Of a stretch of 64,000 nucleotides of DNA, positions 1-62,822 are shown one piece after another. The notes under the pieces were generated by a model. It saw nothing but the letters and a program-made list of their open reading frames with translations. It had not been told where the DNA came from and searched no databases. Each line of letters begins with the position of its first letter. Position 1 is the first letter of the stretch. The DNA is from Takakia lepidozioides (Eukaryota > Plantae > Bryophyta). The stretch lies in the NCBI GenBank assembly GCA_030704615.1, contig CM060732.1:28024001-28088000 (forward strand). Direction: 5' to 3'. Made by a program: the position numbers and the translations under genes.

Positions 1-711
1 GAGTAAGTCACCTTACGGAGCCCCGGTGCTATTCGCAAACAAGAAGGATGGAACGTTGCGGATGTGTGTCGATTACAGGGCTCTGAATAAGGTGACTATC
101 AAAAACCGGTACCCTTTGCCAAGGATCGACGACCTCTTCAATCGGTTGGTAGCAGCCGGATCGATTTGCATTCCGGCTACCATCAAATCCGAGTGGCGGA
201 AGGAGATGAGGAGAAGACCGCATGCAAGACAAGGTATGGTTCATACGAGTTCTTGGTGATGGCTTTTGGGCTCACCAACGCACCCGCAACCTTTAGCACG
301 CTAATGAACAGCCTTTTCCAGGAGTGGTTGGATGACTTTGTGATCGTGTACATCGACGACATCTTGGTGTACTCGAAAACAAATAAAGAGCATCTGGAGC
401 ACCTCAAAACGGTGTTCCAGAAATTGCGAGAAGGGAAGCTGTATGCCAAAGCTTCAAAGTGCAAATTCGGGGTCACGAAAGTGGAGTTCCTGGGGCATAT
501 GATTACACAGGATGGGATCAAAATGGATGACAGAAAGGTGAGGACGATCTTGGACTGGGAGCCTCCGACTTCGGTCCCGGGAGTGCGATCCTTCCTAGGA
601 CTCGCCTCCTATTATCGAGAGTATGTGAGAAATTTCGTCAAGGTCGCGGGGCCGCTATCGGACCTTCTGTGTAAGTCTAAGGTATGGGTATGGAACACCT
701 TTTGGCTTTGA
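1..711 (+). mobile_element. Ty3/gypsy LTR retrotransposon reverse transcriptase fragment (frameshifted, truncated)
   Basis: [35 protein letters not shown], then a small deletion/frameshift near 153 into [23 protein letters not shown] and FLGLASYYR; homology ends near 690. Confidence 0.95.
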
Positions 712-2040
712 GGTAGCCTATACTATATGCGCACACAAATGCATGCATATGGAGGAATGTATGCGTGCATACAAATTTTAGATATGCATAGGAACAATTT
801 TATATGCACAACACTTAAATAAGGGTACCCAAAAAAAATAAAAAATTGTGATTCATCTAATCTTAGGGTCCGTAGTCAAAATATCAAAGGATGGAATAAG
901 AATATTCTATATAGAATATTCCATATTCATTGTAGATTTTTCCACATGGATGAGTGTAGGAATGGGAGATGAACATGTTGCTTTTATGGCTTTCCAACAT
1001 GAGAAAAAAGGTCAAAAAATTAAAAAGTGACGAGGCACGGCTCCTTGTTAGATACAAATGGTGAAGGTACGGGCTCTTCCAATGGTGGGAGTCTAGTTTG
1101 AAGTTCAGAATGGAGCAATGCTAAGGGAATGCTAGGGAGCTTGACAATGCTAGGGAGCTTTGTTACATAGGTTTTGCAGTATCTATATATCTATCTTCTG
1201 AAACATTTTTATTTTACAAAAACATAATGTCCATCAGAGATAGAACCCACAACCTATCGGGTATCAAGCCTAGTTCATACCACTACACTACCCATTCAGA
1301 CTTGAAACACTAATGAAATGAAACACTAATGAGATAAAGATAGTCACTCTGTGTGTACATAAAATGCCACAATACTCATAAGGGTTGATCTTACTAATGA
1401 TGAAATTTGATAGTGCTGAAGTGCATGTCGAACTTACATTAAGGTAAAGGGATCTATGAAATGCAGTAGAGATCTATATACAAACTATTACATAGATAAA
1501 TCAAATGACAGGAAGATAACATGAAATCTGATTTCAACACCATGTCATTTGCCCCATTTGTTTTACCTTACACTAGAGAGAAATACATGTATCATAAAAA
1601 TAACAAAAAACTCGGACTGACAATGAGGACAATGTATTGTATATGTAATTTCTAATTACCTACATAACATCATCAGCTGATACTTCATCATCCGTGTCAT
1701 AAGCCTGTGATTCAGAGGCATACACATCCATGAAAGCCTCAACTCTACGCAACCTATCACGGATTGTCCAACAATAGCTGCTCTTCGGTCAAACAACAGA
1801 TCATTGGAAAGACCTACATCACGTTGTTGATGTATTGAATGCAAAGCTTGGGACTCGACATATGAAGGTAGATAAAACGATGAAAGAGGACTTTGGGGTA
1901 GACTATCGTAGATGGTCCGCACAATCCCATCACTGCATCACACATACATGTATACTTATGTTAACAAATCAAATGGGAATGGTTTGCTTTGCAAATAATA
2001 TAGAGATTGCAACAAAGGGAATGGAGGCGAGACATACTCA

Positions 2041-3650
2041 CTAGGAAGTACTGCCGAGATGAAGACCAAGCTTGCGCGCCACCTTAGGAGCGGGGGGTTC
2101 CAACAAACTCACAGGACGTTGAATGGTTGGAGTTACCACAGATGAAACCAAAACGGGTTGAGTATTTTGAAGTGCAGAGAGACGTGCTGCATACAACGTC
2201 TAGTCCCCCTCAAGACCAAATACGTGACGTCCAGACTCGCGGGCAGCAATAAATGTAGAACCTGTAGGAAAAAAACATGCAATGATGATATTATATCGGA
2301 TAACAGTTAATGATCATGAATCAGCTCAGAAGATTTTAATTACAAAATGGAGACCAATGCAAACATGTGCCAGCTGTGAGATCCAAAATGCGGGAGCCAG
2401 GAGGTGAGCATGTCTCCAACAACACTTGCATGAAGGCGGGACTACGGTCTCGCGCACCCCTCCAGGCTTGTTGAGGAGTTTGCATGGGTAGTGCAACATC
2501 TGGAATGTGGTTGTAGATGGCATCCAACTCAACAGGGACTGCAAGGGGGTCCACAACTTTGCCAGACTCACGCAGTTTGAATAGTCCTCCTTGCTTGGTG
2601 AGGACATGGGCGTGGAAGAACATGGTCTGTTAGACGTGCCATTTCCACAAAAACAGTGCACCCGGATGGTTTAATAATATGTATGAGAGTAGGAAGATGA
2701 AACATCAAACAATGAGATATTGAAGAGGGATGATTTTTACCTTTCATGTCTGAGTGTGTAGAGGGGTGGTATTGATGCAAGTATATTTCCTTGATAATAC
2801 GGAAATAGAGCTGCCCCTGGAGTAAGAAAAGAGCTCCAATGCAAAGGAATCATCGGAGCCCTGCAAGAACACCAAACATCCATTGTCATCCAACAGGTCA
2901 TTAGCAATGGAGAATGCATACTCCCAATACCGTTTATCAAAAGCATTCCAGGGAGGAACCTGTACACCATCCAAATAGCCCTGTACAGGCATTCCTGTTG
3001 GGCAGTGCACGATGATCATGTCCACAGCCACATGCACGCTTTTTCCATCCACAACACTAGACCAAGTTCCTGGCAACTGCAAACAACTATAGAAAATGTA
3101 GGAGTCAATAGCCGGATGATGAGGATATAAAAACATCGAACAATTCCTTACATACAAGTTTGTTTGTTGGGGGAAACTCACATTTTTTTAAGAACTCCAT
3201 GAGCTCTTTCAAGGTCGCATCAGGAGATGTACTTGAGGCCTCCACCATATCAATGAAATGAGTAGGCATGATCTTCATGCGATACATGCTAGGTGCACCA
3301 CCAGAAAATGACACTACACTGTAAGGATGTTCGCCTGCCTTTGGCTTGTTTCCTCGAGTAGTAGGTGCAGGCACTACGACCAACTGATTTGAAGGATGTG
3401 AAGAACTACCAATAAGACCAGCAATAGAAGCCACACTTGCATTGGGGGCCACACCTGCATTGACATCCGCACCTTTTCTTTTTCGTGATTTGTGTTTTGG
3501 TACACCCACAACGGCAGGGACCACTTGGGCTACAGCGTCAGCGGCCTGTGTAGCAATTTGTTCTGCATGCTCCAGATCAAGAACAGGGACTTCAGTGGAG
3601 ATACCCCCTTCATCACTCACTGACTGCCTGCGAACACATTCCTTATGAAG
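2041..3650 (-). pseudogene. Spliced beta-class N4-cytosine/N6-adenine DNA methyltransferase-like gene inside a CACTA element
   Basis: Exons ~3650-3156, 3076-2741, 2626-2365 and 2261-2041 are joined in frame by GT-AG introns of 79, 114 and 103 nt. Motif IV-like VDMIIVHCPT and LLDDNGCLVF precede SAM motif I PPGSRILDLTAGTCSTFIAARESGRHVFGLEGD. Two premature stops (2744-2746 TGA, 2200-2202 TAG); 5' end lost. Confidence 0.75.
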
Positions 3651-6217
3651 TCCCTCATTCCTGGAAAGGAATCTGTGACAAGTGAAAATGTGGATGTTTA
3701 CCTGCAACCACTAGTGGAGGAGCTAACGACATTGTGGGTGGGAGTTGCAGCCGTGGATGTGGCAGCCATTGAAGGAGAGCGGGCTTTTAACATGCGTGCA
3801 GTCCTCATGTGGTCCATACATGACTTCCCCGCCTATGGCTTGTTATCAGGTCAGGTTCACCAAGGGTACTGTGCTTGTCCAGCATGTGGACCTCAAGTCG
3901 ATTCCAGATATTCCCCAGCTTGTAAGAAATTGATATTCCAGGGGCATCGACGCTATCTTCCCCACAATCATGCCTATAGAAGATCCAGACTTTTTAATGG
4001 GGCGCGAGACATGAGACCTACTCCACATACAGTGATAGCCACCGAAATCAAGGAGCGTGCACTACATTACAAACAATGGATTGATGATGGTGGGACTGTA
4101 GGCGCACAGAACGATCCCTCCAAGCTCCATGGCATAAAACGATTGTCCATTCTGTTTGACTTGCCTTACTGGGAGGTGCGATTACCACACATGTGTTTTG
4201 GGAACAAAACAGTGCATTGGTTTTTCATTGTGCATGATTGTTTGTTTACTGAACCTGTGCTGTAAACATCATTCATGATTGCATTGCAATGTGCCTAATT
4301 TGTTAGACCACATCTTATCATCCGCCACACTTTTGATACCATGCATTGCGAGAAGAACGTGACGGAGAACATAATCAAGACTATTTTTGGCGAGAAGGAC
4401 ACGATGCAAGTTCGCCGCGATATGGAATTGCAGGGCATTCGAAAGCCTCTTTGGTTACGACGCCATCCCACCAGAGTGGATACATTGGTAATGCCTGATG
4501 CGCCATATATGCTCACAAAACCAGAGCAGCGGGTGTTCCTGGAGATTATCACGAATCTGAAAGTACCCACTGGCTATGCCTCTGCTTTCAAAAAACATGT
4601 GGTCAAACAAAAGTTGAGCCAATTGAAGTCACATGATTATCACGTGCTAATGCAACAGATCCTCCCACTTGCTCTACGTGGGTTGATGGCGCCTGGGGTT
4701 CGCAATGCCATACTAAGAGTGTCCCGTGTGTTTCGCAAGCTTTGTGCAAAATTCATTGATCCCACCGAGCATGAGGAATTGAAGAAGGAGGTGGCAGTGA
4801 CTCTTTGTCTTCTGGAGAAAGAGTTCCCACCCTCATTTTTTGATGTTATGACACATTTACTTATCCACTTGGTGGATGAGGTGGATTTGTGTGGACCTGT
4901 AGCTTCTCGGTGGATGTACCCGGTGGAGAGAGCAATGAAGGATTTTAAAGGGTATGTGCGAAACTTGGCGAAGCCTGAGGGCAGTATGGCGGAGGGCTAC
5001 GTGTTTGACGAGGCATTGGGATTTTGTACAGAGTACTTGTCTTCTGTTGATGCTACTAGGCGGAGAGTGTGGGATGCAGGAGAGGAGGAATCAGTGTCGG
5101 GCTGGGTATTGGAAGGAGTTGGTCGACCACGGAGGTTGACCCTCGAATTGTTGCAGCTTGTCCACGACTACATCATTCACAACCATCCCAGTTTGAGCAT
5201 TATGTTGGGGTAAGTGGCAAACGTTCTGGTACCTGCTATGCATGGGTATGCTTTGTATAGGTGTGTGTGCAGTAGTTCTTCCATCGGTTGCAGGGGTTGC
5301 ACTAGATAAATTTCTGTGGTTGTGCGTGTGTTGGCAGGTCCTATGAGGTGGAGAAATGCAGGTTGGAGACTGAAAATGCTACTAACCAGAACAAGATCCG
5401 TGCTCTCCCTCACTTTGCAGAATGGCTGGTAAAAGCAGTCCGCCAGCATGTGTCAAGTGTTGCCAACTATGCTACTGATTCAGCTTGCAAGGAATTGTTG
5501 GACATGTCCAAACCCCCATCAGTAATCGCAACATCATACAAGAGCATGTCGGCTTATGGAAACCACTTCAGGGTTACTTCAGATGGACTCAACAGCCCCT
5601 TTGTGACATATGACTCGGGGGTCTCTACTGTTTTCCAGCATGACAGTACTTGCATTGACCGTGAGCAGGTGGTGGAAAGCGTACGGTATGTGGGTGTCAT
5701 AAAGGAGATTTTAGAATTGGATTATGGCTCCACAAACACCACGGTGCTATTGTGTTCATGGGTATGTGCACGACGTGTGGGCTCTCAGCCTGTGTCAATG
5801 AAGTAGGATGAGTCTAGCTTCACATTGGTGAATTTCTCCCACTTGTTGCCTCCACTTGAACAGCCTTTTGTGCTCCCATCACAGGTCGAGCAAGTTTTTT
5901 TCTCTGAGTGTGTGAATGAACCGAGATGAAACGTGGTGCTGGAAAAAAACCCCAGGTCACGCAGGGCTGTTTCTGATGTGAGCATTTGCAACGATGATAT
6001 TGCAAGTGTATCAGGCCTCTTAGCCCCCAATCACATTGAAGAGACCAATGTTGCTAGTGACAGGGTGGGCCAGACCATCCAAGTGACACCTGAAGAGGTT
6101 GCTTCACTTTACAGAGACATGCGATCTGAGGAAGCACATCCATGTCCCACGGAGGACAGTTGCGATGGAGATTCAAAGTCCAGTGATGAGGAGTTGGTTG
6201 ATGTGGATGTGTACTAG
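3645..6217 (+). mobile_element. CACTA/En-Spm transposase (Tnp2/Transposase_21 C-part, DUF4218- and DUF4216-like), degenerate
   Basis: LIPG...VDVYLQPLVEELTTLW, WSIHDFPAYG, CPAC, LFDLPYWE, DTMHCEKNV, LKSHDYHVLMQQ, FPPSFFDVMTHL..HL, RWMYPVER, PEGSMAEGY, YGNHFRV..YDSGV, QPFVLPSQVEQVFF. N-terminus deleted; in-frame stops near 5804 and 5927. Confidence 0.93.
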
Positions 6218-7559
6218 TACCTAGAATGAGGTATGACTTCCCCCCCCAACTGCCTTCCTCTATCTCAAGTATATGAAGGGTGGTATTGGGCAAAATTGAA
6301 TATGTAATCCCGGTTGATGTATGAATAATGTGGGATTCATAAGACTGGCACTAAGGGTTGCCCTTGGGGGTGTCCTTTTTGCAGGGTGTTGGAGGTGTCC
6401 AACTTACATGGCGTGTCTGTCTGGCAACGTGTCATGACATTTATGTCACTATAGACTTTGGAACGGCATGCAAATTTACACATCAGTTCTGCCTTTGGGT
6501 ACATTGTTGACAAAGTGCATGTGCCTTCCAGTTTACATTACATAATTGCCCCAGTGATTTTGTGGGTCTTATATTGGGCAGGCTCGTGTTTATGGACCAT
6601 TGAATACCAATGGAGTGCTTTTAAGCTTGGTCCCTACTTATCATATTTTCATTTTTCCCCAAAAGAATCTGGCAATCCGCATAGATGATGCTCTGGCTGG
6701 TTGAGTGGGTTATTTGCGTAGATGCATTTTATGGGCAGTTTCTCTCATGCCCCAGCTAACACCATGTGACTCACTTGTATAGTCCCCCATCTGTGAATGG
6801 CTCAAGCAGGGTGCAGTACATTCAACACTACAATGTTGCTGCCCTGCAGGTGTTCCATGCCTTGCACCACATCATTATTCCCTGATGTCATCCTGCTGCT
6901 GTTCTAGCTTGGGGCAGGTCATTGGGGATATGTACATTAGAGAGAACAACATGAGCTGTTATCTCAGTTGTTTTATCATACAAGAAGCTGAATTCATGGG
7001 CTCTCCCATTCTTAGAAAACCCCCCCATGACAAAGTGGGTGGATCGGAACAGACCGTATTGCCAAGCTTCTATTCCAGTAGCACACGGCGTGGAGCTCCG
7101 GGATGGCCTACTACAGGGACGACATGCACAAGGCGATATGTTAGAGTGTATTGGATTTCATATTTTGTTGGTGTTCTTGGTCACTGCCCAAAGACTTTTG
7201 TTGAGCCCATGTTTTGCATCACTCTCATGAGTGAATTTTTTGATTTGCATGAATTTATCTATCCCCTGAATGCATCATTTGTTCGTCTGTCATTCCGCAG
7301 TATGAGGCACATGATTGATGATGTCGGCGATCAACAAACACTAAAATGCACACCGCCATTTGAACGTAACGTCACAAACAGATGCGGTTCCAGATCGCCT
7401 CTCTAGCATGTTGGCTTGACGTTCCATTCTTCTCCACAAAGCGCCAACGGCCTACTAAGCTGCTTCGTGTGCAACCGTTCCCGTCACTTGCATCCCCCGC
7501 ACCACAATATCAAAGCCACTTAACCAATCATATGTAGACACCTCATAAGTTGTTCCATG

Positions 7560-7896
7560 TCACAGACTCTCCATGTCATGACGACATGTGATGATCTGGC
7601 AGAATACATTAGAGTGGCAGTCATGAAGTCATATGTCCGTCTAGCAATATGCACACGTCATTCACGTATGGGCATGACCCTGACTGGTAGTCATATCCAC
7701 CATGGCAATATTCCTGGTCAAAGGGTGTTTGACCTGTGTTGCGCAAAGTTCGGAGTCATACAGTCGCATAACCGGCTTCGTCGTGATCTATGTTATGACT
7801 TCAAAAGGCATTTACGACTGCAAATGGCATTTCTGCCACAAATTGGTCGTGACTGCGCACCCGTGGGAGTCATAAAAGCCGCAATCTGTTGTAGTG
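7560..7896. mobile_element. CACTA right end: subterminal GTCAT/ATGAC repeats and TIR ending ...ATCTGTTGTAGTG
   Basis: Ends in TAGTG (reverse complement of CACTA) at 7896; the terminal 30 bp match 61981-62010 at 29/30 positions. Confidence 0.85.
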
Positions 7897-8891
7897 TACT
7901 TCTGGCAATCCAAAGCTGCTACTAATGCTCAAATTAGACAGACACTTAAATTCCAGTATGCTCAATATATAGGCCACCAACGTAAACACATTTTTTGGCC
8001 ACACCTATTCCCCTCCCCATACTGCCCTCTCTGCTTACATACCCACAGGAGGGGGACACCTGACTGCACATCCTCAGCTAGTGCACGCACCTGATCATTC
8101 ACGGACTCCGCACAACCTGCCATAACCACGCACTCCAACACATCCATAAACTCCTCATGCACCGCGCTAAGACCAGATGGTTCTCACTCATTAATGCCGG
8201 CACCTACCAAGGCAGACCCCTAGACCACACCGTCTCGCACTGGCTACTCCCCTTTGTCTGCCCCCATTCACCGTGTATTTGCCCTGCTAGGCTATGCCTC
8301 GACATCCTGATTATCCATGGACCTATCAACGCCTCTCCACCAACCTCCTCATCCTCAAATCTTACCGTTCACTTCATTGAGTTCACTTTTTGTTATGACC
8401 AGTACCCGGCCTCCTCTACCCTAGACAAACGACAAAAAATTGCACCCCTTATCCTTGCGCTACGCCATAGAGGCTGGAATACCGGCCCTCTATCTGTTAT
8501 CACAGCTGGTACTAGAGGCGACATCCATAATGCCAGTATTAATACTCTACACAAAAACTTTAAAATCCCAATATCCCCCATCCATAAATGCTTCAAAGCA
8601 ATACACCTCACGACACTTCGCTCCCTTACAGCCATTATTACCAATAAGCAAAAACTAGAATCTAACCCACATAAGGCCTCATAGACTCCAAGGTTTCCAT
8701 TAGTACCCTTGGGTACCTAGGTACCCAAGGATACCCTGGGTACCCTAAGCGCATCTATCCCCTGGATACCTGGTGTCCCCTGGACACCTTTTCTTATAGG
8801 GCCCACCCCCAAAATGGGGCAGTAGCCGTGAGACGAAGCGGCTCTTAGTTACGCCGGTTTCGGCCAGAGTCTTCTCTCTCTCTCTCTCTCT
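7897..8891 (+). mobile_element. 3' fragment of an RLE-type non-LTR retrotransposon (Dualen/RandI-like), ending in (CT)n
   Basis: CPLC zinc knuckle, HN(H)A, then PD-(D/E)xK-like RLCLDILII...VHFIEFTFCYD...KRQK.APL...GW; the 3' UTR ends in a CT microsatellite at 8871-8891. Confidence 0.75.
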
Positions 8892-9477: not shown

Positions 9478-10500
9478 CACTACTACGATTTGTTGGGGGG
9501 GGGGGGGGGTTAGCGACGTCGGAGCGTCGCCACAGCGCCGCTCCGGTGACGCTTCGCCATCTTGCGTTGCCGCCACGTCGCTGCAATTGGGGCATGACCC
9601 GCCAGCAAGCTGGGGGTTGCGATGCCCAGGAGTCGCACGTACCCTCTGCGACGCTCCCGCAAGGCTGTGACTCCCGGAAATCGCAACAACACCCCCTCCT
9701 ACTTAGGCGCGTGGGGAGGGCCGAGCCAGCTCAAGGTGGGGTTTGCGACGTCCGGACGTCGCAGAAATGCCACAATGACGAGGTTGCGATTCCCTGCAGT
9801 CGCAGACCTGCCGGGGCGTCACAATACCCTCTTCCCTGGGGTCCTAGGATTGGGGATTGCTGCTACGTAATAATTGTTTTTTTGGTTGTGTTTTGTTCTG
9901 TGAATTCGACCTTTGCACCACTACATCCGTGCAAAAGATTGGACCCAAAAAAAATAAAAATAAAAAATGTTTTCTTTGTTCACTATTGCAGAACTCTCTA
10001 TGAAGAATGCATGAAGTTGAAGACAACTCAATTTTGGAGTGCAAATGAGGGAAGAAAATATGGTTTTGGGGCCAAATGGTTTTTATTCACTCTCAATTTT
10101 TTCAGGCAGATTGCATATGTTGTCATTAAGCATATGGTTTAAGAACGGAATTAAAAAAAAATCATGTACAAATAAAATGTAGTTTTCCGTCTCTGAAACA
10201 CGTAGATGCGTTCAACACTTGAATGACCCATTGAATGAACTTGGTTCAAGCTCATATTTGGTCGACATGTGCTTAAGTTGCAAAGTCGCAAAATTGCAAA
10301 ATTTATGCAAAGTCGCAAAAGATGAGCAACATTAAGAAATATGCTCATCTACAATGCACGAACTTGAAGAGAACTCAACCTTGGAGTGCAAATGAGGGAA
10401 GAAAATATGGTTTTGGGTGCAGATGATGTCTTTCACTGCCAAATTTTGCATGCATATACATGTTGTCATTAAGCATATGGTTTAAGAATGGAATAAACTT
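9478..10500. mobile_element. Left end of a second-family CACTA-like element with subterminal repeats
   Basis: Starts CACTACTACGATTTG at 9478, followed by GC-rich GCGACG/CGTCGC repeats and a duplicated ~130-bp block (~10020-10150 and ~10370-10495). No matching right TIR found. Confidence 0.55.
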
Positions 10501-10933
10501 ATTTCCTCAACAGACTCTGGAATGTAAAGACGCTGCAAAGTTTTCCCCGGAATACAACAAAGACGAAAATGGATTTGGAGAACTAGGAAGTTCTGGCACT
10601 GAGCTGTTTTCTGAATTGACAGAAACATTTCTTGAAATTATAATCAGCTCAGAGCTTGCATATGGCATACTCCCTTCTTCTACAGCTTCATCACTGGAAT
10701 GGATGGAATGTATGGAGAATGCTTGCATTGTTTTCTTGCACTGTCTCCATAGAGAGCCAACGATCGTTGAAGCTTTTAATTGCGTAATAATTGATGAGGA
10801 TGCACAACAAGTAGAATCAGAGACTGCTATTATCACCCAGATGAGAGAACTGAAGCAAATCATTCTTGTTGGAGATCACTCGGTGTATAAAGCTTTGGCC
10901 TTATTTCAAAATCAACATCAAATCAAATCATAA
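10460..10933 (+). pseudogene. Fragment of a DNA2/NAM7 (UPF1/senataxin-like) SF1 helicase
   Basis: FNCVIIDEDAQQVESETAI...LKQIILVGDH corresponds to degenerate Walker B (IIDEAAQ) and motif III (LVGD); the rest of the helicase is absent. Confidence 0.65.
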
Positions 10934-10959: not shown

Positions 10960-11850
10960 CTCCAGTTGCACGTCGTTGCTTTTGTGGGAGTTGTTTGACA
11001 TAATCACCTAAGTCATAGCAGACATCCACTGTCAGGAGACAACGTTGACATCTAGATACATCAGATAACTTCTAGAGAACCTCGGATTAGGTGCATGCTA
11101 AACTTCTTTGGTGACATCCTCGATTCCTTGACGAATTCGAAAGGTTTTGTCACAGAACGATGCAATTGCAATCGGCCCCGAATACTCTTCGTCACAGGAA
11201 AACACGCGCACATGCTAAAGTAGGATGGTAGAGAGAAGCACAACATCAGATGTTTCGCTTTGTATATCAGATGAGATCCCATTAACATTTCCACCTCCAT
11301 GTGACTTGCATAGCGTAGAGTCTTGGTGCCAATTTGCATCACTTGCTCCAGTTGCATGTCGTTGCTTTGTGGGAGTTGTTTGACATAATCATCCAAGTCG
11401 TAGCAGGCATCCACTGTCAGGAGACAACGTTGACATTTAGATACATCAGATAACTTCTAGAGAACCTCGGATTAGGTGCATGCTAAACTTCTTTGGTGGC
11501 ATCCTCGATTCCTTGACGAATTCGAAAGGTTTTGTCACAGAACGACGCAATTGCAATCGGCCCCGAATACTCTTCGTCACAGAAAAACGCGCGCACATGC
11601 TTAGGTAGGAGCACAACATTGGATGTTTCGCTTTGTATATCGGATGAGATCCCATTAACATTTCCACCTCCATGTGATTTGCATAGCGTAGAGTCTTGGT
11701 GCCAATTTGCATCACTTGCTCCACTTGCACGTCGTTGCCTTTGTGGGAGTTGTTTGACATAATCACCTAAGTCGTAGTAGGCATCCATTGTCAGGAGACA
11801 ACGTTCACATGTAGATACATCACATAACTTCTAGAGAACCTCGGACTAGG
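10960..11850. repeat. Tandem duplication, ~375-385-bp unit, ~2.3 copies
   Basis: Near-identical units start at ~10966, ~11351 and ~11724 (TTGCA.GTCGTTGC..TTGTGGGAGTTGTTTGACATAATC). Confidence 0.92.
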
Positions 11851-48562: not shown

Positions 48563-50107
48563 AAAAATCAAGTTGCAAAACAGAGAGCGTGTCACTTCAA
48601 ATGTGAGGTGATTATTTTTGGAATTTAAAGAAATGATGATCTGTTAGTACGACACTGGGAGCTATCACAGTTCATGACTTATAACCATATTCCAGCAGTC
48701 AGCATTGAGGTGACGGAAACCTTTATTACCGAAGTTTTGTTGCAGATTCCAGGGAACTGTAGTAAAGAGAAAGAACAATGTCCTGCGAGTACACAGACTA
48801 TTACTCCTTTCACAGCCCACAGCTGCCTACAGATCTCAGGATTGCCCTAGTTCTGCATTGGCAAGTCAACGGCAGAACCTTTAGGCTGCATGCGGACGGA
48901 GAATATCCTATTGATAGTAGAAAAGGTGTTTTGATGTCTTGATACCTTCCACTTGAAAGAAGTGATGGAGGGGCTTCTAATTTGATGTTCACTATCTTAG
49001 TGATTTTGAAAGTAGAGCTTCCAATCAGGGCACTGTTTTCAATTGTGGTTCCTGGTTTCAGACTGAACCCTCCTCAGAATGAAGGCATATGCTGGAGAGG
49101 CTCTCTATGCTTCAGTGTGGGCCAGACTCACATTGTATGGCATTACTCAGACCCTTTAGGAGTACTGGGTAATAAGTTGCTGAACAAAGGCAATTTGCAG
49201 ACCATTCTCTCTTGTCTTCCAAATGTCCATGCAGCAAGGGGTTGTCGGATACTAGAGATATCTTGTACACCATTCCGTACCTTTCGGCAGTTAAGATTCA
49301 GTCCCTGCCCTGCCTAAATGTTTGTTCAATCCAAGCAACCTCCACTGAGTTCAAATGCTCGCTCTGGCTGTATTTAGACAATCAGAAATAAACATGAACC
49401 CTCTGGACGTAATGAAAGGTGGCTATTTTCACGAATACAACCAGAGTGCTCCACTCAGAATCTTCCAGCAACCTAAGAACTAGAGTACCAATAAACTAAA
49501 CAACACAGGTGAGTTTAATAGATAAGAGAGGAGGGGGCTATGCAAACAACCGGATGAGCAGATTAGTTGCCAATGTAGCTGGACAAACACTACAACAGAT
49601 ACACTGGTAGCCAAACCCCACAAAGGCCACCAGGATGCAAAACATGGACTTTGGTTGTAGCTGATCCATTCGCCCTTGTATTAATAACAGGTCTAAGTCT
49701 TTTGCTTGCTGATCTCTAGGGACATATGTCCGCAGATTAAGATGATAAACTTCCGTGTACCTATTCTCCATGCCATTGCTTTGTAATCCACCTTCTAAAT
49801 GGATTGAAGTTCAGGCGTTCAAACCCAAAGATATATACAGTTAAGAATTAAATTAATGAGGACAATTGCATGTCCACCACAAAGATGGAGGCATGAAAGG
49901 GTTACATAGTTTTTCAACTTCCATTCAGACAGGCATGGATCCCTAGGAAGAAGCCATCTCTGCATATCATATTTTGGTGTATTTACTCCGACACCTCTAC
50001 AGAAACAAAATCTTTGAAATTGCACTTTGTGCAAGCTTAACCCTCTGAACAAAATAAGATTGGAAGCCGGGTAGAGCAGATATAAGTCATCAAATCTTTT
50101 ATTAAAA

Positions 50108-58953: not shown

Positions 58954-59871
58954 GTGAAATTTGTTGAGGTTTGTGTTATTGAAGAAGAGGTGAAAGAAAA
59001 TCATATGAGAACAACATTCCTTTGTGGACAAGACCAAGACCACCACAATGGAGAAATTCCATACCCAACTGATATGCGCTTACTGGCTCCATTCCATGAA
59101 TGGATTGAAGGTGCTGTCCAACGCAAGGTGAGTTCAGGTGAGTCCTATGATTTGGAAATATGCCATTTATGTATACCACCAGCAGTACAGTCCTTGGGCT
59201 TCAAGTCCATGTATGCTTACGGCAATCACTTTCGAGCAATACGTGATGGGACTGGCGCCACAGACAGGGTGAAATTTGATTCTGGAGTTGCTCAAGTATT
59301 CCATCAGGAAAGCGAAAACAGAGCAGGTATGTCCAAACGAGTGTTATCCCAATTGGAATATGTGGGTGTTGTAACAGAAATAATTCAACTGGATTACGGA
59401 ATTCTTCACCCAATTCTGTTCTTGTGTAGATGGGTGAGGTCACACATGGTGGGCCGGAATGCCACCATGAAACGAGATGATTATGGCTTTCTCTTGGTTG
59501 ACTTCAGTCGCATGTTACCTCGGATGGAGCAGCCCTGGACATTCCCTAGTCAGGTGGAGCAAGTTTTTTTCTCGGATGAAAAAAGTTCACGAGGGAACTC
59601 GAAGGTGGTCTTTCACAAGGACCCTCGATCCCGACGAGTGGTTCACAATATTACAGAAGTGGCACTGGGTGAGGGAGACACTTATGTAGGCATGGTGCCT
59701 CCTGAAATTCCTCATAACATCATGACTGAGCTTGCTGTTTGTGTTCCTTTGAGTGAGGCAGATGAATTGGCCATTGCCAACTTGAATGCACTTGCAAGGC
59801 AGAGGCAAAATGGTAGAAGGCGGAGGCAAGCTCCACATGGGAGGTACCAGGCCAGTTGTGCTATGGTCTAG
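58954..59871 (+). mobile_element. CACTA transposase C-terminal (DUF4216-like) fragment
   Basis: FKSMYAYGNHFR..FDSGV..YVGVVTEIIQLDYG..LFLCRWV..KRDDYGFLLVDF..QPWTFPSQVEQVFF..KDPRSRR; paralogous to 5348-6217. Confidence 0.88.
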
Positions 59872-60017
59872 AGTTGGTTTCTGCTATTGCATGTATTTTT
59901 CCAGGGTTTAGACTTGATACAGCATGGTACCTTGCATGGGTGGGAGTGACTGAGCTGTTGGGGTGGGCAAAATTCTGACAAACACACTTTTATTTGTGAC
60001 AGTGAACCCTAAACAGT

Positions 60018-62822
60018 CATGGAGTTGTGGCATGCATACTTTTTCTGACCCTAGTCAATGGTGGGCCAATTGTGGCAAAAAGGTGAATGCATGTTGGATT
60101 ATAGAGAGTAGCAGATGCAATTGAGCATAGGAACTAGTGTGAGAAGTTGAGTTGGGTGTTTCCTAGAACAAATGTAGGCTGTTATTGTCAGTTGCTACCA
60201 GCAAGGCAAAGATGTATGCATGATTTGTGAGAGGCATGGATAGCTGAAGGAGCAGGGATAGAGTGTGGGTCCAGATTCATCCAAGAGGGCCACATTTCAA
60301 GCACAACATTGCCTATGATTCCTTGTGGAAGGATAGCTACAAGAAACCTGCATGGGTAGATGGTCAACTCGAAGCCGCAGCAGCAGCGGCACAATTGGTA
60401 AAATCAGACGATGAGGGCACCTTCTTCAACACATTTCACCCTGTTTTTCCCCCTTATCAGAATCAGCCCTAAATTTCCATGTTGAATTATGCAAGTTAGC
60501 TGGTTGAGTGAATCTTTGATAGATTGAAGTGACTTTGACATGATACTGCCAATGTGACAACAGGAAAGTATCCAAAAACAGGTACAAGAGATGAGGAGAA
60601 GGTGTGGAATGAATACTTTTCTGATCCAGTCAATGGTGGGACAACCGAGGCAAAAAGGTGAATGCCTGGCAGATTACCAGATGTCATTTTGAACACTGCC
60701 CTGGTGGAAATATATGCCAAATGTGGGTGCATCGAGGATGCCAAGGGAGTGTTCAACACTATGGCTAAACGAGATGTGGTGTCGTGGAGTGCGATGCTTG
60801 CAGGGGCATGGGATGGAGGCTTTGGAGACCTATGAGCAAATGATGGGGGAAGGGTGAAGCCCGACCACATAACATTTGTGTGTGTTGGCAGTGAGTGTGG
60901 GAGCCTGGCAGCCCTGGAAAAGGGCAAAGAGATCCATCGTGACAATTTGCAATTGTACCAGATGTCATCCTGAACATGACTGCTCTGGTGGACACATGTA
61001 TGCCCAATGTGGGAGCATTGAGGATGCGAAAGGAGTGTTCAACACTATGGCTGAACAAGATTGTGCGTTTGCAGTGCGTGTGCAAGTCTAGCAGCCCTGC
61101 AAAAGGGCAAAGTGGTGCATGGTTGCATCACCAAAGCTGGAATTGTAACAGATGCAATTCTGAACAATGCCCTCGTGGACATGTATGCCAAATATATGTG
61201 AGAGCATTGAGGATGCGGAGGGAGTGTTCAACACTATGGCTGAACAAGATGTGGTGTCGTGGAGCGCGATGCTTGCAGGATGTGCACAGCAGTGAAGTGG
61301 GATGGAGCCTTTGGAGACCTATCATGACCAAATGATGGGGGAAGGGATGAAGCCCGACCACAACACATTTGTGTGCGTTTGCAGTGCGTGTGCAAGCTTG
61401 GCAGCTCTGGAAAAGGGAAGAGGTCCATGGTTTCATTGTCAAAGCTGGAATTGTATTTGACGTGATTATGAACAATGCCCTCGTGGACATGTATGCCAAA
61501 TGTGGGAGCATCAAGGGCAAGCCTGCCAGCTCTGGAAAAGGGAAGATAGGGTCCATGGTTTCATTGTCAAAGCTTGCATTGTACCTGATTGTGATTCTGG
61601 ACAATGCCCTCGTGGACATGTATGCCAAATGTGTTAGCATGAAGGGCAAGCCTGGCAGCTCTGGAGGAACCACGTGTCAAAATCACGATGCGACACATGC
61701 TGACGTCCGATTCTCTCCTCTGCAGTCGGGATGGCGTCGCAGTCTGACACGTGGCGTGTTCTGTAGAGAGCACGTGTCTCTCTTACACAGCGGCTGACAT
61801 GGACCCGTTCAGTCATTCAGTAAAGCCAACGTGTATGACTACCCCCACAGCTGCTCAGGCGCCACGTCACAGCCAGGCTGACGAGTCATATCTGCCATGC
61901 CACAACTGACTAGGGTTTTACGACTGCAGAGTCATGAAGTCGTAAATGGCTTTCATAAGTGCATTTGCAGTCATAACACAGAGTCGTAAAAGCCGCAATC
62001 TGTTGTAGTGGATCATGACAGGGCCTACGACATCACGGTTTCCAATTTTCCCAATTGCACATGTCCTGATTTTGTGAATATGCTATCAACCAGATGTTTA
62101 ATAATGTGCCACTGTCGCATGTTGGTCAAAAGTAATAATAATAATAATAATTATTATTATTATTATAGTAATTATAATAACAATAAATTAAATCCCCAAC
62201 CCCCCCCCAGTACCTGATGTGATTTTGAACAATGCCCTCGTGGATATGTATGCCAAATGTGGGAGCATCAAGGGCAAGCCTGCCAGCTCTGGAAAAGGTT
62301 TTGATTAGGTCCATGGTTTTATTGTCAAAGCTGGAATTGTACCTGATTGTGATTGTGGACAATGCCCTCGTGGACAAGTATGCCAAATGTGGGAGCAATG
62401 CGTGTGCAAGCCTGGCAGCTCTGGAAAAGGGAAGAGGTCCATGGTTTCATTGTCAAAGCTGGAATTATACCTGATGTGATTCTGGACAATGCCCTCGTGG
62501 ACATGTATGCCAAATGTGTCAGCATGAAGGGCAAGCCTGGCAGCTTTGGAAAATGGAAGTGGTCCATGGTTTCATTGTCAAAGCTGGAATTGTACCTGAT
62601 GTGATTCTGAACAATGCCCTCGTGGACATGTACGCCAAATGTGGGAGCATCAAGAGCAAGCTTGCCAGCTGTGGAAAAGGGAAGATCAGGTCCATGGTTT
62701 CATTGTCAAAGCTGGAATTGTACCTGATTGTGATTCTGGACAGTGCCCTCGTGGACATATATGCCAAATGTGGGAGCATCAAGGATGCAAAGGCAGTTTT
62801 CCAACACTATGGCTCTTGGAGT
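60018..62822 (+). pseudogene. Scrambled PDF-motif + PLS PPR pseudogene
   Basis: LWHAYFSDPSQWWANCGKK|IHPRGPHFKH...SLW..KPAWV, a second frameshifted VWNEYFSD.SQWWDNRGKK, then frameshifted and tandemly repeated L/S motif halves (IVKAGIVPDVILNNALVDMYAKCG). Confidence 0.85.
61670..62010. mobile_element. CACTA terminal fragment within the PPR pseudogene
   Basis: Subterminal GTCAT/GTCGT repeats and TIR GAGTCGTAAAAGCCGCAATCTGTTGTAGTG, 29/30 identical to 7867-7896. Confidence 0.85.

Follow-up and report, generated by a model that had tools for sequence, protein, structure and literature searches.

We analyzed a 64,000-nucleotide stretch of the genome of Takakia lepidozioides (contig CM060732.1, positions 28,024,001–28,088,000; hereafter the window), in which a spliced methyltransferase-like gene on the minus strand lies back-to-back with the remains of a Tnp2 transposase gene of a CACTA transposon. 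Our analysis indicates that positions 1830–3654 of the window probably represent a transposon accessory gene of a multi-copy, intron-containing family, here decayed and 5'-truncated, and that its adjacency to Tnp2 is a rearrangement junction. An earlier interpretation made from the letters alone (the sequence-only reading) had taken positions 2041–7896 as one CACTA transposon carrying a spliced gene of a bacterial-type, beta-class amino-DNA-methyltransferase.

The minus-strand gene, read directly from the sequence, extended from 3654 to approximately 1830 and consisted of five exons joined by GT–AG introns, with the frame kept throughout:
3654–3156, minus strand: exon 0, a basic low-complexity linker with KHKSRKRK, resembling a nuclear localization signal; its 5' side is truncated
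3155–3077, minus strand: intron 1, 79 nt, GT..AG, phase 0
3076–2741, minus strand: exon 1, with the strand and loop equivalent to motif IV (VDMIIVHCPTG), a PPWN motif and the LLDDNGCLVF strand; it holds a TGA stop
2740–2627, minus strand: intron 2, 114 nt, phase 0
2626–2365, minus strand: exon 2, with the WRGARDRSPAFMQ motif and the first half of motif I (ILDLTAGT)
2364–2262, minus strand: intron 3, 103 nt, phase 1, splitting motif I
2261–2042, minus strand: exon 3, with the second half of motif I, GRHVFGLEGD and the TLYAARL region; it holds a TAG stop
2041–1933, minus strand: intron 4, 109 nt, with a conserved GTGAGT donor (2041–2036) and an acceptor AG (1934–1933)
1830–1932, minus strand: conserved part of exon 4, whose first base completes a TA|T codon and which is conserved in the same frame with L001 11130–11240

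The four minus-strand exons, the GT–AG introns and all peptides quoted in the sequence-only reading were present in the sequence. The gene end placed at 2041 was not borne out: the TAG at 2043–2041 overlaps the conserved GTGAGT donor and a fifth exon begins at 1932, so the gene extends to the left of 2041. The open frame of exon 4 runs on to 1656, and its conservation in relatives reaches approximately 1830. Two in-frame stops were found, TGA at 2746–2744 (exon 1) and TAG at 2202–2200 (exon 3), and both had been described as C>T-type. The first stands opposite GGA in six relatives and thus arose by G>T and not C>T; the second stands opposite GAA, Gln or Lys codons, among which a C>T origin is possible. 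With two stops and the N-terminal half lost at 3654, the window copy is dead, 5'-truncated and non-functional, which agrees with the earlier interpretation.

The exon order and intron positions of the window gene recurred in 13 metagenome loci and in several ENA/Logan contigs, and the ratio of nonsynonymous to synonymous substitutions (dN/dS) between the window and distant copies was 0.11–0.21; therefore, the gene structure is not due to chance, and its description as a spliced eukaryotic gene holds. Judged by this conservation alone, the gene is presumably spliced and expressed in its functional form. Inside one subfamily of 84% identity, dN/dS was 0.55–1.0 and nearly all copies carried stops. 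Such strong constraint between subfamilies combined with near-neutral decay within them is typical of transposon-borne genes, which are under selection in active lineages and decay once inserted. Exon 2 was 53–68% identical to most copies from moss metagenomes and approximately 44% identical to the L012/L013 subfamily. Exon 0 matched L005, L007, L010 and L011 from residue 20 of its open frame (tblastn). The window exons aligned at an E-value of 3e-13 to three longer uninterrupted relatives from Logan contigs, P0041, P0043 and P0044 (tblastn), to all of which exon 2 was aligned. P0044 is an intact relative extending through the C-terminus, and L023 and L024 seem open exon by exon. A phmmer search with exon 1 gave 41 proteins at E ≤ 1e-3, mostly exon-sized fragments of plant DNA in metagenomes; three of them (2,500–5,300 aa) were rejected as spurious RTX-repeat proteins, in which just the DDNG stretch was matched. 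In a word-indexed protein database, exon 1 matched only one short relative, and full-length queries brought no further sequence.

Methyltransferase identity was tested on residues 300–560 of P0044, and the window exons were searched singly. Pfam family PF01555 matched the P0044 region with an E-value of 4.6e-5 and 23.9 bits (profile positions 32–216 of 221), and phage DNA methyltransferases from PHROGs matched it at 6e-6 and 1.2e-4. In ESM Atlas, all 30 nearest clusters (30/30) belonged to PF01555 (0.94–0.95). An AlphaFold model of the region, built from an alignment from which short exon-3 pieces misplaced by MAFFT were kept out, had a predicted template modelling score (pTM) of 0.68. The top 15 Foldseek matches of this model were all beta-class enzymes, the best being 6pbd (E-value of 2.9e-5, probability 1.00); CcrM, M.BceJIV, M1.HpyAVI, MboIIA, TTHA0409 and PvuII were among them, and MT-A70 proteins followed. 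Profile searches and the model thus support a divergent beta-class (PF01555-type) amino-DNA-methyltransferase fold in this gene family, with the permuted order in which the motif IV region precedes motif I. Since Pfam, PHROGs, ESM Atlas and Foldseek agree on P0044, the beta-class N6_N4 layout recognized from the letters alone holds. Single window exons had no methyltransferase match in Pfam or among PDB sequences, their best PDB matches being spurious, and this is what a chance resemblance of short motifs in translated junk would predict. Such an explanation is effectively refuted by the agreement of the four independent tests on the intact relative and by purifying selection on the frame.

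The canonical motif IV, (D/S/N)PP(Y/F/W), for which H was also accepted at the last position, was replaced throughout the family by D-[C/V/L/I/M]-P-x-G. The loop was HCPTG in the window, DCPMG or DCPIG in moss copies, and DVPEG, DLPES, DIPDG or DMPTG elsewhere. In the model, the first beta strand (23–29) ends with this loop, which would be equivalent to motif IV by position, an equivalence not drawn from a residue-level structural alignment. In motif I of the window (LDLTAGT|C), the second Gly is changed to Cys, and P0044 has VDVLASTG; the glycine loop was kept in other relatives as LDLRCGTG (L023), LDWQCGTG (L022/L024) and LDLTCNTG (L021). Motif I is followed in the family by GR-x-(I/V/F)-x-(A/G/L)-x-E, as in beta-class enzymes. 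Because the family has no (D/S/N)PP(Y/F/W) catalytic loop, the active writer of N4-methylcytosine (4mC) or N6-methyladenine (6mA) envisaged earlier is doubtful: its fold was supported and its canonical motif IV was not. That the gene family at large is still a transferase is conceivable, with the balance somewhat against it.

The gene meets the CACTA element at a single position, around which the following features were delimited:
3654–6217, plus strand: Tnp2 remnant in four open-frame pieces, with the N-terminal third or more gone
6218–7896, plus strand: CACTA 3' subterminal region and right terminal inverted repeat (TIR), the TIR occupying 7867–7896 and ending ...TTGTAGTG
3654–3655, no strand: breakpoint at which the 5'-truncated methyltransferase-like gene (minus) meets the 5'-truncated Tnp2 (plus)

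The Tnp2 remnant matched PF02992 at an E-value of 5.5e-35, starting from profile position 76 of 213, and PF13960 at 1e-38; it was 38–54% identical to the Tnp2 of L001. The trinucleotide TAC at 7897–7899 is a candidate copy of the target site. Homology on the gene side stopped at 3654, and Tnp2 homology began at 3654. Two contigs from other samples of this organism (X6 and X7) matched 3295–3654 at 95–99% and then diverged into unrelated, non-Tnp2 sequence for at least 255 nt. As sister copies run past 3654 into sequence other than Tnp2, 3654/3655 is a copy-specific junction. A gene carried by a CACTA element would be expected between two matching TIRs with a 3-bp target-site duplication; here, the right end at 7867–7896 was the sole one, and we failed to find a left CACTA TIR anywhere left of the gene in the window with up to six mismatches permitted. 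The lost 5' half of the gene was sought rightward of 7896, beyond the CACTA end, and was not found there. A 30-nt twin of the right end was located at 61981–62010 (29/30 nt identical). It closes a second CACTA remnant (58954–62010), which holds a DUF4216-bearing C-terminal piece of a transposase (39% identity with the first copy); further CACTACAACAG-type CACTA ends occurred at 49588 (plus) and 12103 (minus). No methyltransferase-like exon was found near the second remnant or the ends at 49588 and 12103. CACTA remnants are thus frequent in the window, with at least two more ends, and a chance adjacency to one of them is unremarkable.

Linkage to Tnp2 was judged on approximately nine independent related loci, with flanks of about 4–10 kb on the sides covered. 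Tnp2 was near the gene in L001 only, where it was co-oriented with the gene and upstream of it. Between the two stands a CACTA terminal repeat that ends at 7602, leaving 20 nt to the first conserved (N-terminal) exon of the gene; this arrangement is a nested CACTA. No Tnp2 was present within these flanks in L005, L009+L010, L012/L013, L017, L019 and L023, and none was carried by the ENA elements L022 and L024/L025. The expectation that homologues would lie consistently near Tnp2 inside CACTA TIRs was therefore contradicted by the single Tnp2-bearing locus, in which a TIR stands between the two, as well as by the other loci. Right ends of one CACTA family (26 nt, 88% alike) were situated upstream of the gene at 7602 in L001 and at 5285 in L010. 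The former directly precedes the first exon, and the latter sits between a transposase-like gene and a palindrome array; these ends may mark a recurrent insertion site.

According to the sequence-only reading, the gene is genuine cargo of this CACTA element. In that case it would be located head-to-head with Tnp2 in a full-length element, and the window would hold an internal-deletion derivative lacking both 5' ends and the left end. A single deletion would then account for both truncations meeting at 3654/3655, and there is a parallel in red-algal Plavaka elements of the EnSpm superfamily, which carry a PF01555 accessory gene of a kind that shifts between transposon families. Nevertheless, this is unlikely given the missing left TIR, the at least 255 nt of non-Tnp2 sequence beyond 3654 in sister copies, the terminal repeat between Tnp2 and the gene in L001, and the six other loci without Tnp2 nearby, some of which have a different transposase-like gene head-to-head with the methyltransferase-like gene. 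The gene is not supported as cargo of the window CACTA; its adjacency to Tnp2 is a breakpoint, best read as nesting plus deletion. Also improbable is a variant in which the accessory module moved in this plant lineage from its usual (Mutator-like) carrier into a CACTA element. The window would then be a deletion derivative of the hybrid, and D-x-P-x-G would be either a new kind of active site or the mark of a selected pseudo-enzyme. If true, land plants would thereby have a counterpart of the mobile cassettes of accessory genes seen in red-algal Plavaka.

The reading of the gene as a transposon accessory gene joined to Tnp2 by rearrangement draws further on complete relatives, in which an N-terminal exon, a middle region with a basic linker and the methyltransferase-like domain follow in this order. 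The conserved N-terminal exon (IPLCR...VR, VWDGNHR..A) was located upstream of the gene in L024 (7291–7845), L023, L019 and L001; its motif pattern is one we take to be ParB/Srx-like. The middle and N-terminal region of P0043 gave an AlphaFold model with a predicted local distance difference test score (pLDDT) of 44.6, which was unusable, and had no match in ESM Atlas. A conserved transposase-like open frame of 430–770 aa was head-to-head with the gene in L024/L025, L010 and L019 and downstream of it in L022. The encoded protein had a zinc finger and a D..D..CxxH pattern, by which it may be Mutator-like. Palindrome arrays were found in L010 (6604–7246; a 64-bp unit present 10 times, its arms approximately 18 bp long, 256 nt ahead of the gene unit) and upstream of the gene in L019 (4495–4705; 4.9 copies of a 43-bp unit); in L024, an array was sought and none was found. 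The window holds just one palindrome pair, the back-to-back GTACCC-NN-GGGTAC at 8703–8734 (expected 0.03 by chance), which may be what remains of the palindrome array of the element; this motif was not found in the related loci examined. Sister gene copies carry TAGTACCCTTGGG just past the 3654 breakpoint.

The loci L022, L024 and L025 (ENA ERZ25073694) share a 5-kb unit, 97–98% identical, which holds the gene with its N-terminal exon and methyltransferase-like domain only and has sharp ends with neither inverted repeats nor target duplications. L024 and L025 have a further 5 kb in common upstream, including the transposase-like gene. Linkage to hAT transposons in L022 and L024 was considered and rejected: the 5-kb unit common to these loci ends just short of the hAT genes, whose DNA sequences are not alike. 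Among the neighbours of other related copies were a chromodomain integrase fragment (L005 3602–3988), a WD40 host gene (L013 13108–14814) and a Bet v 1/polyketide-cyclase-like (Bet v 1/PYL-like) host gene (L005 10933–11607). An unrelated repeat of approximately 760 bp was common to L005 (19–835), L010 (172–956) and L017 (2825–3583), being inserted in the last within the 3' part of the gene's unit.

The host genes adjoining the copies in L013 and L005, together with the undefined terminal repeats and target-site duplications of the gene's unit, would fit a decayed member of an ordinary multigene family of the host that came among transposon debris by chance. We regard this as very unlikely. The copies are many and dispersed, have sharp common boundaries and conserved non-coding flanks, and are nearly all pseudogenes; they decay almost neutrally within a subfamily against strong constraint between subfamilies; and the gene is repeatedly accompanied by a transposase-like gene and palindrome arrays.

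Several observations weigh against our interpretation of the window gene as a transposon accessory gene with a beta-class fold. With 23.9 bits, the PF01555 match stays under the gathering cut-off (26.7), and full-length P0044 scored 20.8 bits. The mean pLDDT of the AlphaFold model was 65.6, with TM-scores of only about 0.4. Profile searches of the N-terminal exon in Pfam, NCBIfam, PHROGs and PDB gave no ParB match, and the putative transposase had no match in Pfam. Neither terminal repeats nor target-site duplications were found around the gene's unit in L001, L013, L019 and L022–L025. CACTA sequence adjoins the gene in three loci: the window, L001 and, as a solo end, L010. Splicing had no RNA support: no RNA run contains the stretch, and the contigs show no splice joints.

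In intact members of the family, the N-terminal domain may bind the palindromes of its own element, and the methyltransferase-like domain may mark the palindrome DNA or merely grip it. This domain would either methylate nearby DNA or, its aromatic base-stacking residue being lost as in METTL14, only hold it. Marking or gripping of DNA could help the element to recognize itself or to resist silencing. In the window, a copy of such a gene would have been joined by rearrangement to a separately truncated CACTA element.

Other features of the window lie on either side of these elements. A retrotransposon reverse-transcriptase open frame (26–711, plus strand; PF00078, E-value of 1.8e-28) stops abruptly and is followed by an AT-rich region (711–1650) with neither a gene nor a tRNA. 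Right after the CACTA end, a 175-aa open frame (8157–8684, plus strand) had no Pfam match and looks by eye like part of another mobile-element protein. A helicase fragment (10460–10933, plus strand; AAA_11, E-value of 6.5e-6) is followed on the minus strand by two nearly duplicate open frames in tandem (11061–11414 and 11446–11766).

In its broad form, the notion that a transposon carries an amino-methyltransferase accessory gene was right, and it has algal precedents (PMC12477816; 10.1101/2025.02.11.637652). In Ectocarpus, Sola1-1_Ec32 carries an accessory gene with ParB-like and N4C/N6A-methyltransferase domains opposite to the transposase, and earlier green and red algal ParB–methyltransferase cases (Iyer et al. 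2011) are cited in the same work (PMC12477816). Both that gene and the window family are spliced transposon genes with a prokaryote-type N4C/N6A-methyltransferase domain behind an N-terminal domain of DNA-binding type, a putative one in the window family. Relatives of the window gene are likewise transcribed opposite to a transposase-like gene, and for both types binding and marking of their own DNA is proposed. Unlike the Sola-type genes, the window family comes from a seed-free land plant and moss-associated samples, its N-terminal exon is ParB-like by pattern only, its catalytic loop has neither PP nor the aromatic residue, and its partner transposase is neither Sola nor recognized by Pfam. 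Red-algal Plavaka elements (EnSpm/CACTA superfamily) encode PAG2 (PF01555 and SET) and PAG3 (ParB-like and 2-oxoglutarate oxygenase) beside inverted-repeat arrays, and their cassettes hop between transposon superfamilies, Mutator included (bioRxiv 10.1101/2025.02.11.637652; Curr Biol 2025). The window family resembles them in having a PF01555-type domain as a transposon gene and inverted-repeat arrays beside the accessory gene; it differs in that no SET or oxygenase domain was found and linkage to a CACTA-type transposase is unsupported.

Bacterial and phage beta-class enzymes (CcrM 6pbd, M.BceJIV, M1.HpyAVI 5hfj, M.MboIIA 1g60, M.PvuII 1boo) were the best structural and profile matches, with the same permuted motif order and the same GR-x-(I/V/F)-x-(A/G/L)-x-E motif; the window family departs from them in its identity of about 15%, the change of DPPY/SPPY to D-x-P-x-G, the eukaryotic introns and the long N-terminal extensions. 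Marchantia MpDN4MT1a/b are host genes with proven 4mC activity (bioRxiv 10.1101/2021.02.12.428880). Together with rotifer N4CMT they are, like the window family, eukaryotic genes of bacterial amino-methyltransferase ancestry. By description, they are active, single or tandem host genes, whereas the window family is multi-copy, transposon-associated and has no canonical loop. METTL14, with an EPPL loop, is a catalytically dead MT-A70 partner of beta-class-related fold, in which the aromatic residue of motif IV is lost and selection persists. The window family shares with it the loss of this residue in a fold kept under selection, although METTL14 belongs to a different clade; by analogy, this likeness suggests a nucleic-acid-binding scaffold role for the window family. 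No land-plant report of such transposon accessory genes was found in the literature searched.

The significance of the window locus is modest: it adds little by itself, being a dead fragment, and its family is a further member of an already published kind. Transposon proteins that recognize and chemically mark the DNA of their own element are a newly recognized class, so far described for algae. The occurrence of this family in seed-free land plants widens the class, and here a methyltransferase fold has stayed under selection with its canonical catalytic loop gone. The relatives that are intact (P0044) or seem so exon by exon (L023 and L024) make it testable whether these proteins write 6mA/4mC or only bind DNA.

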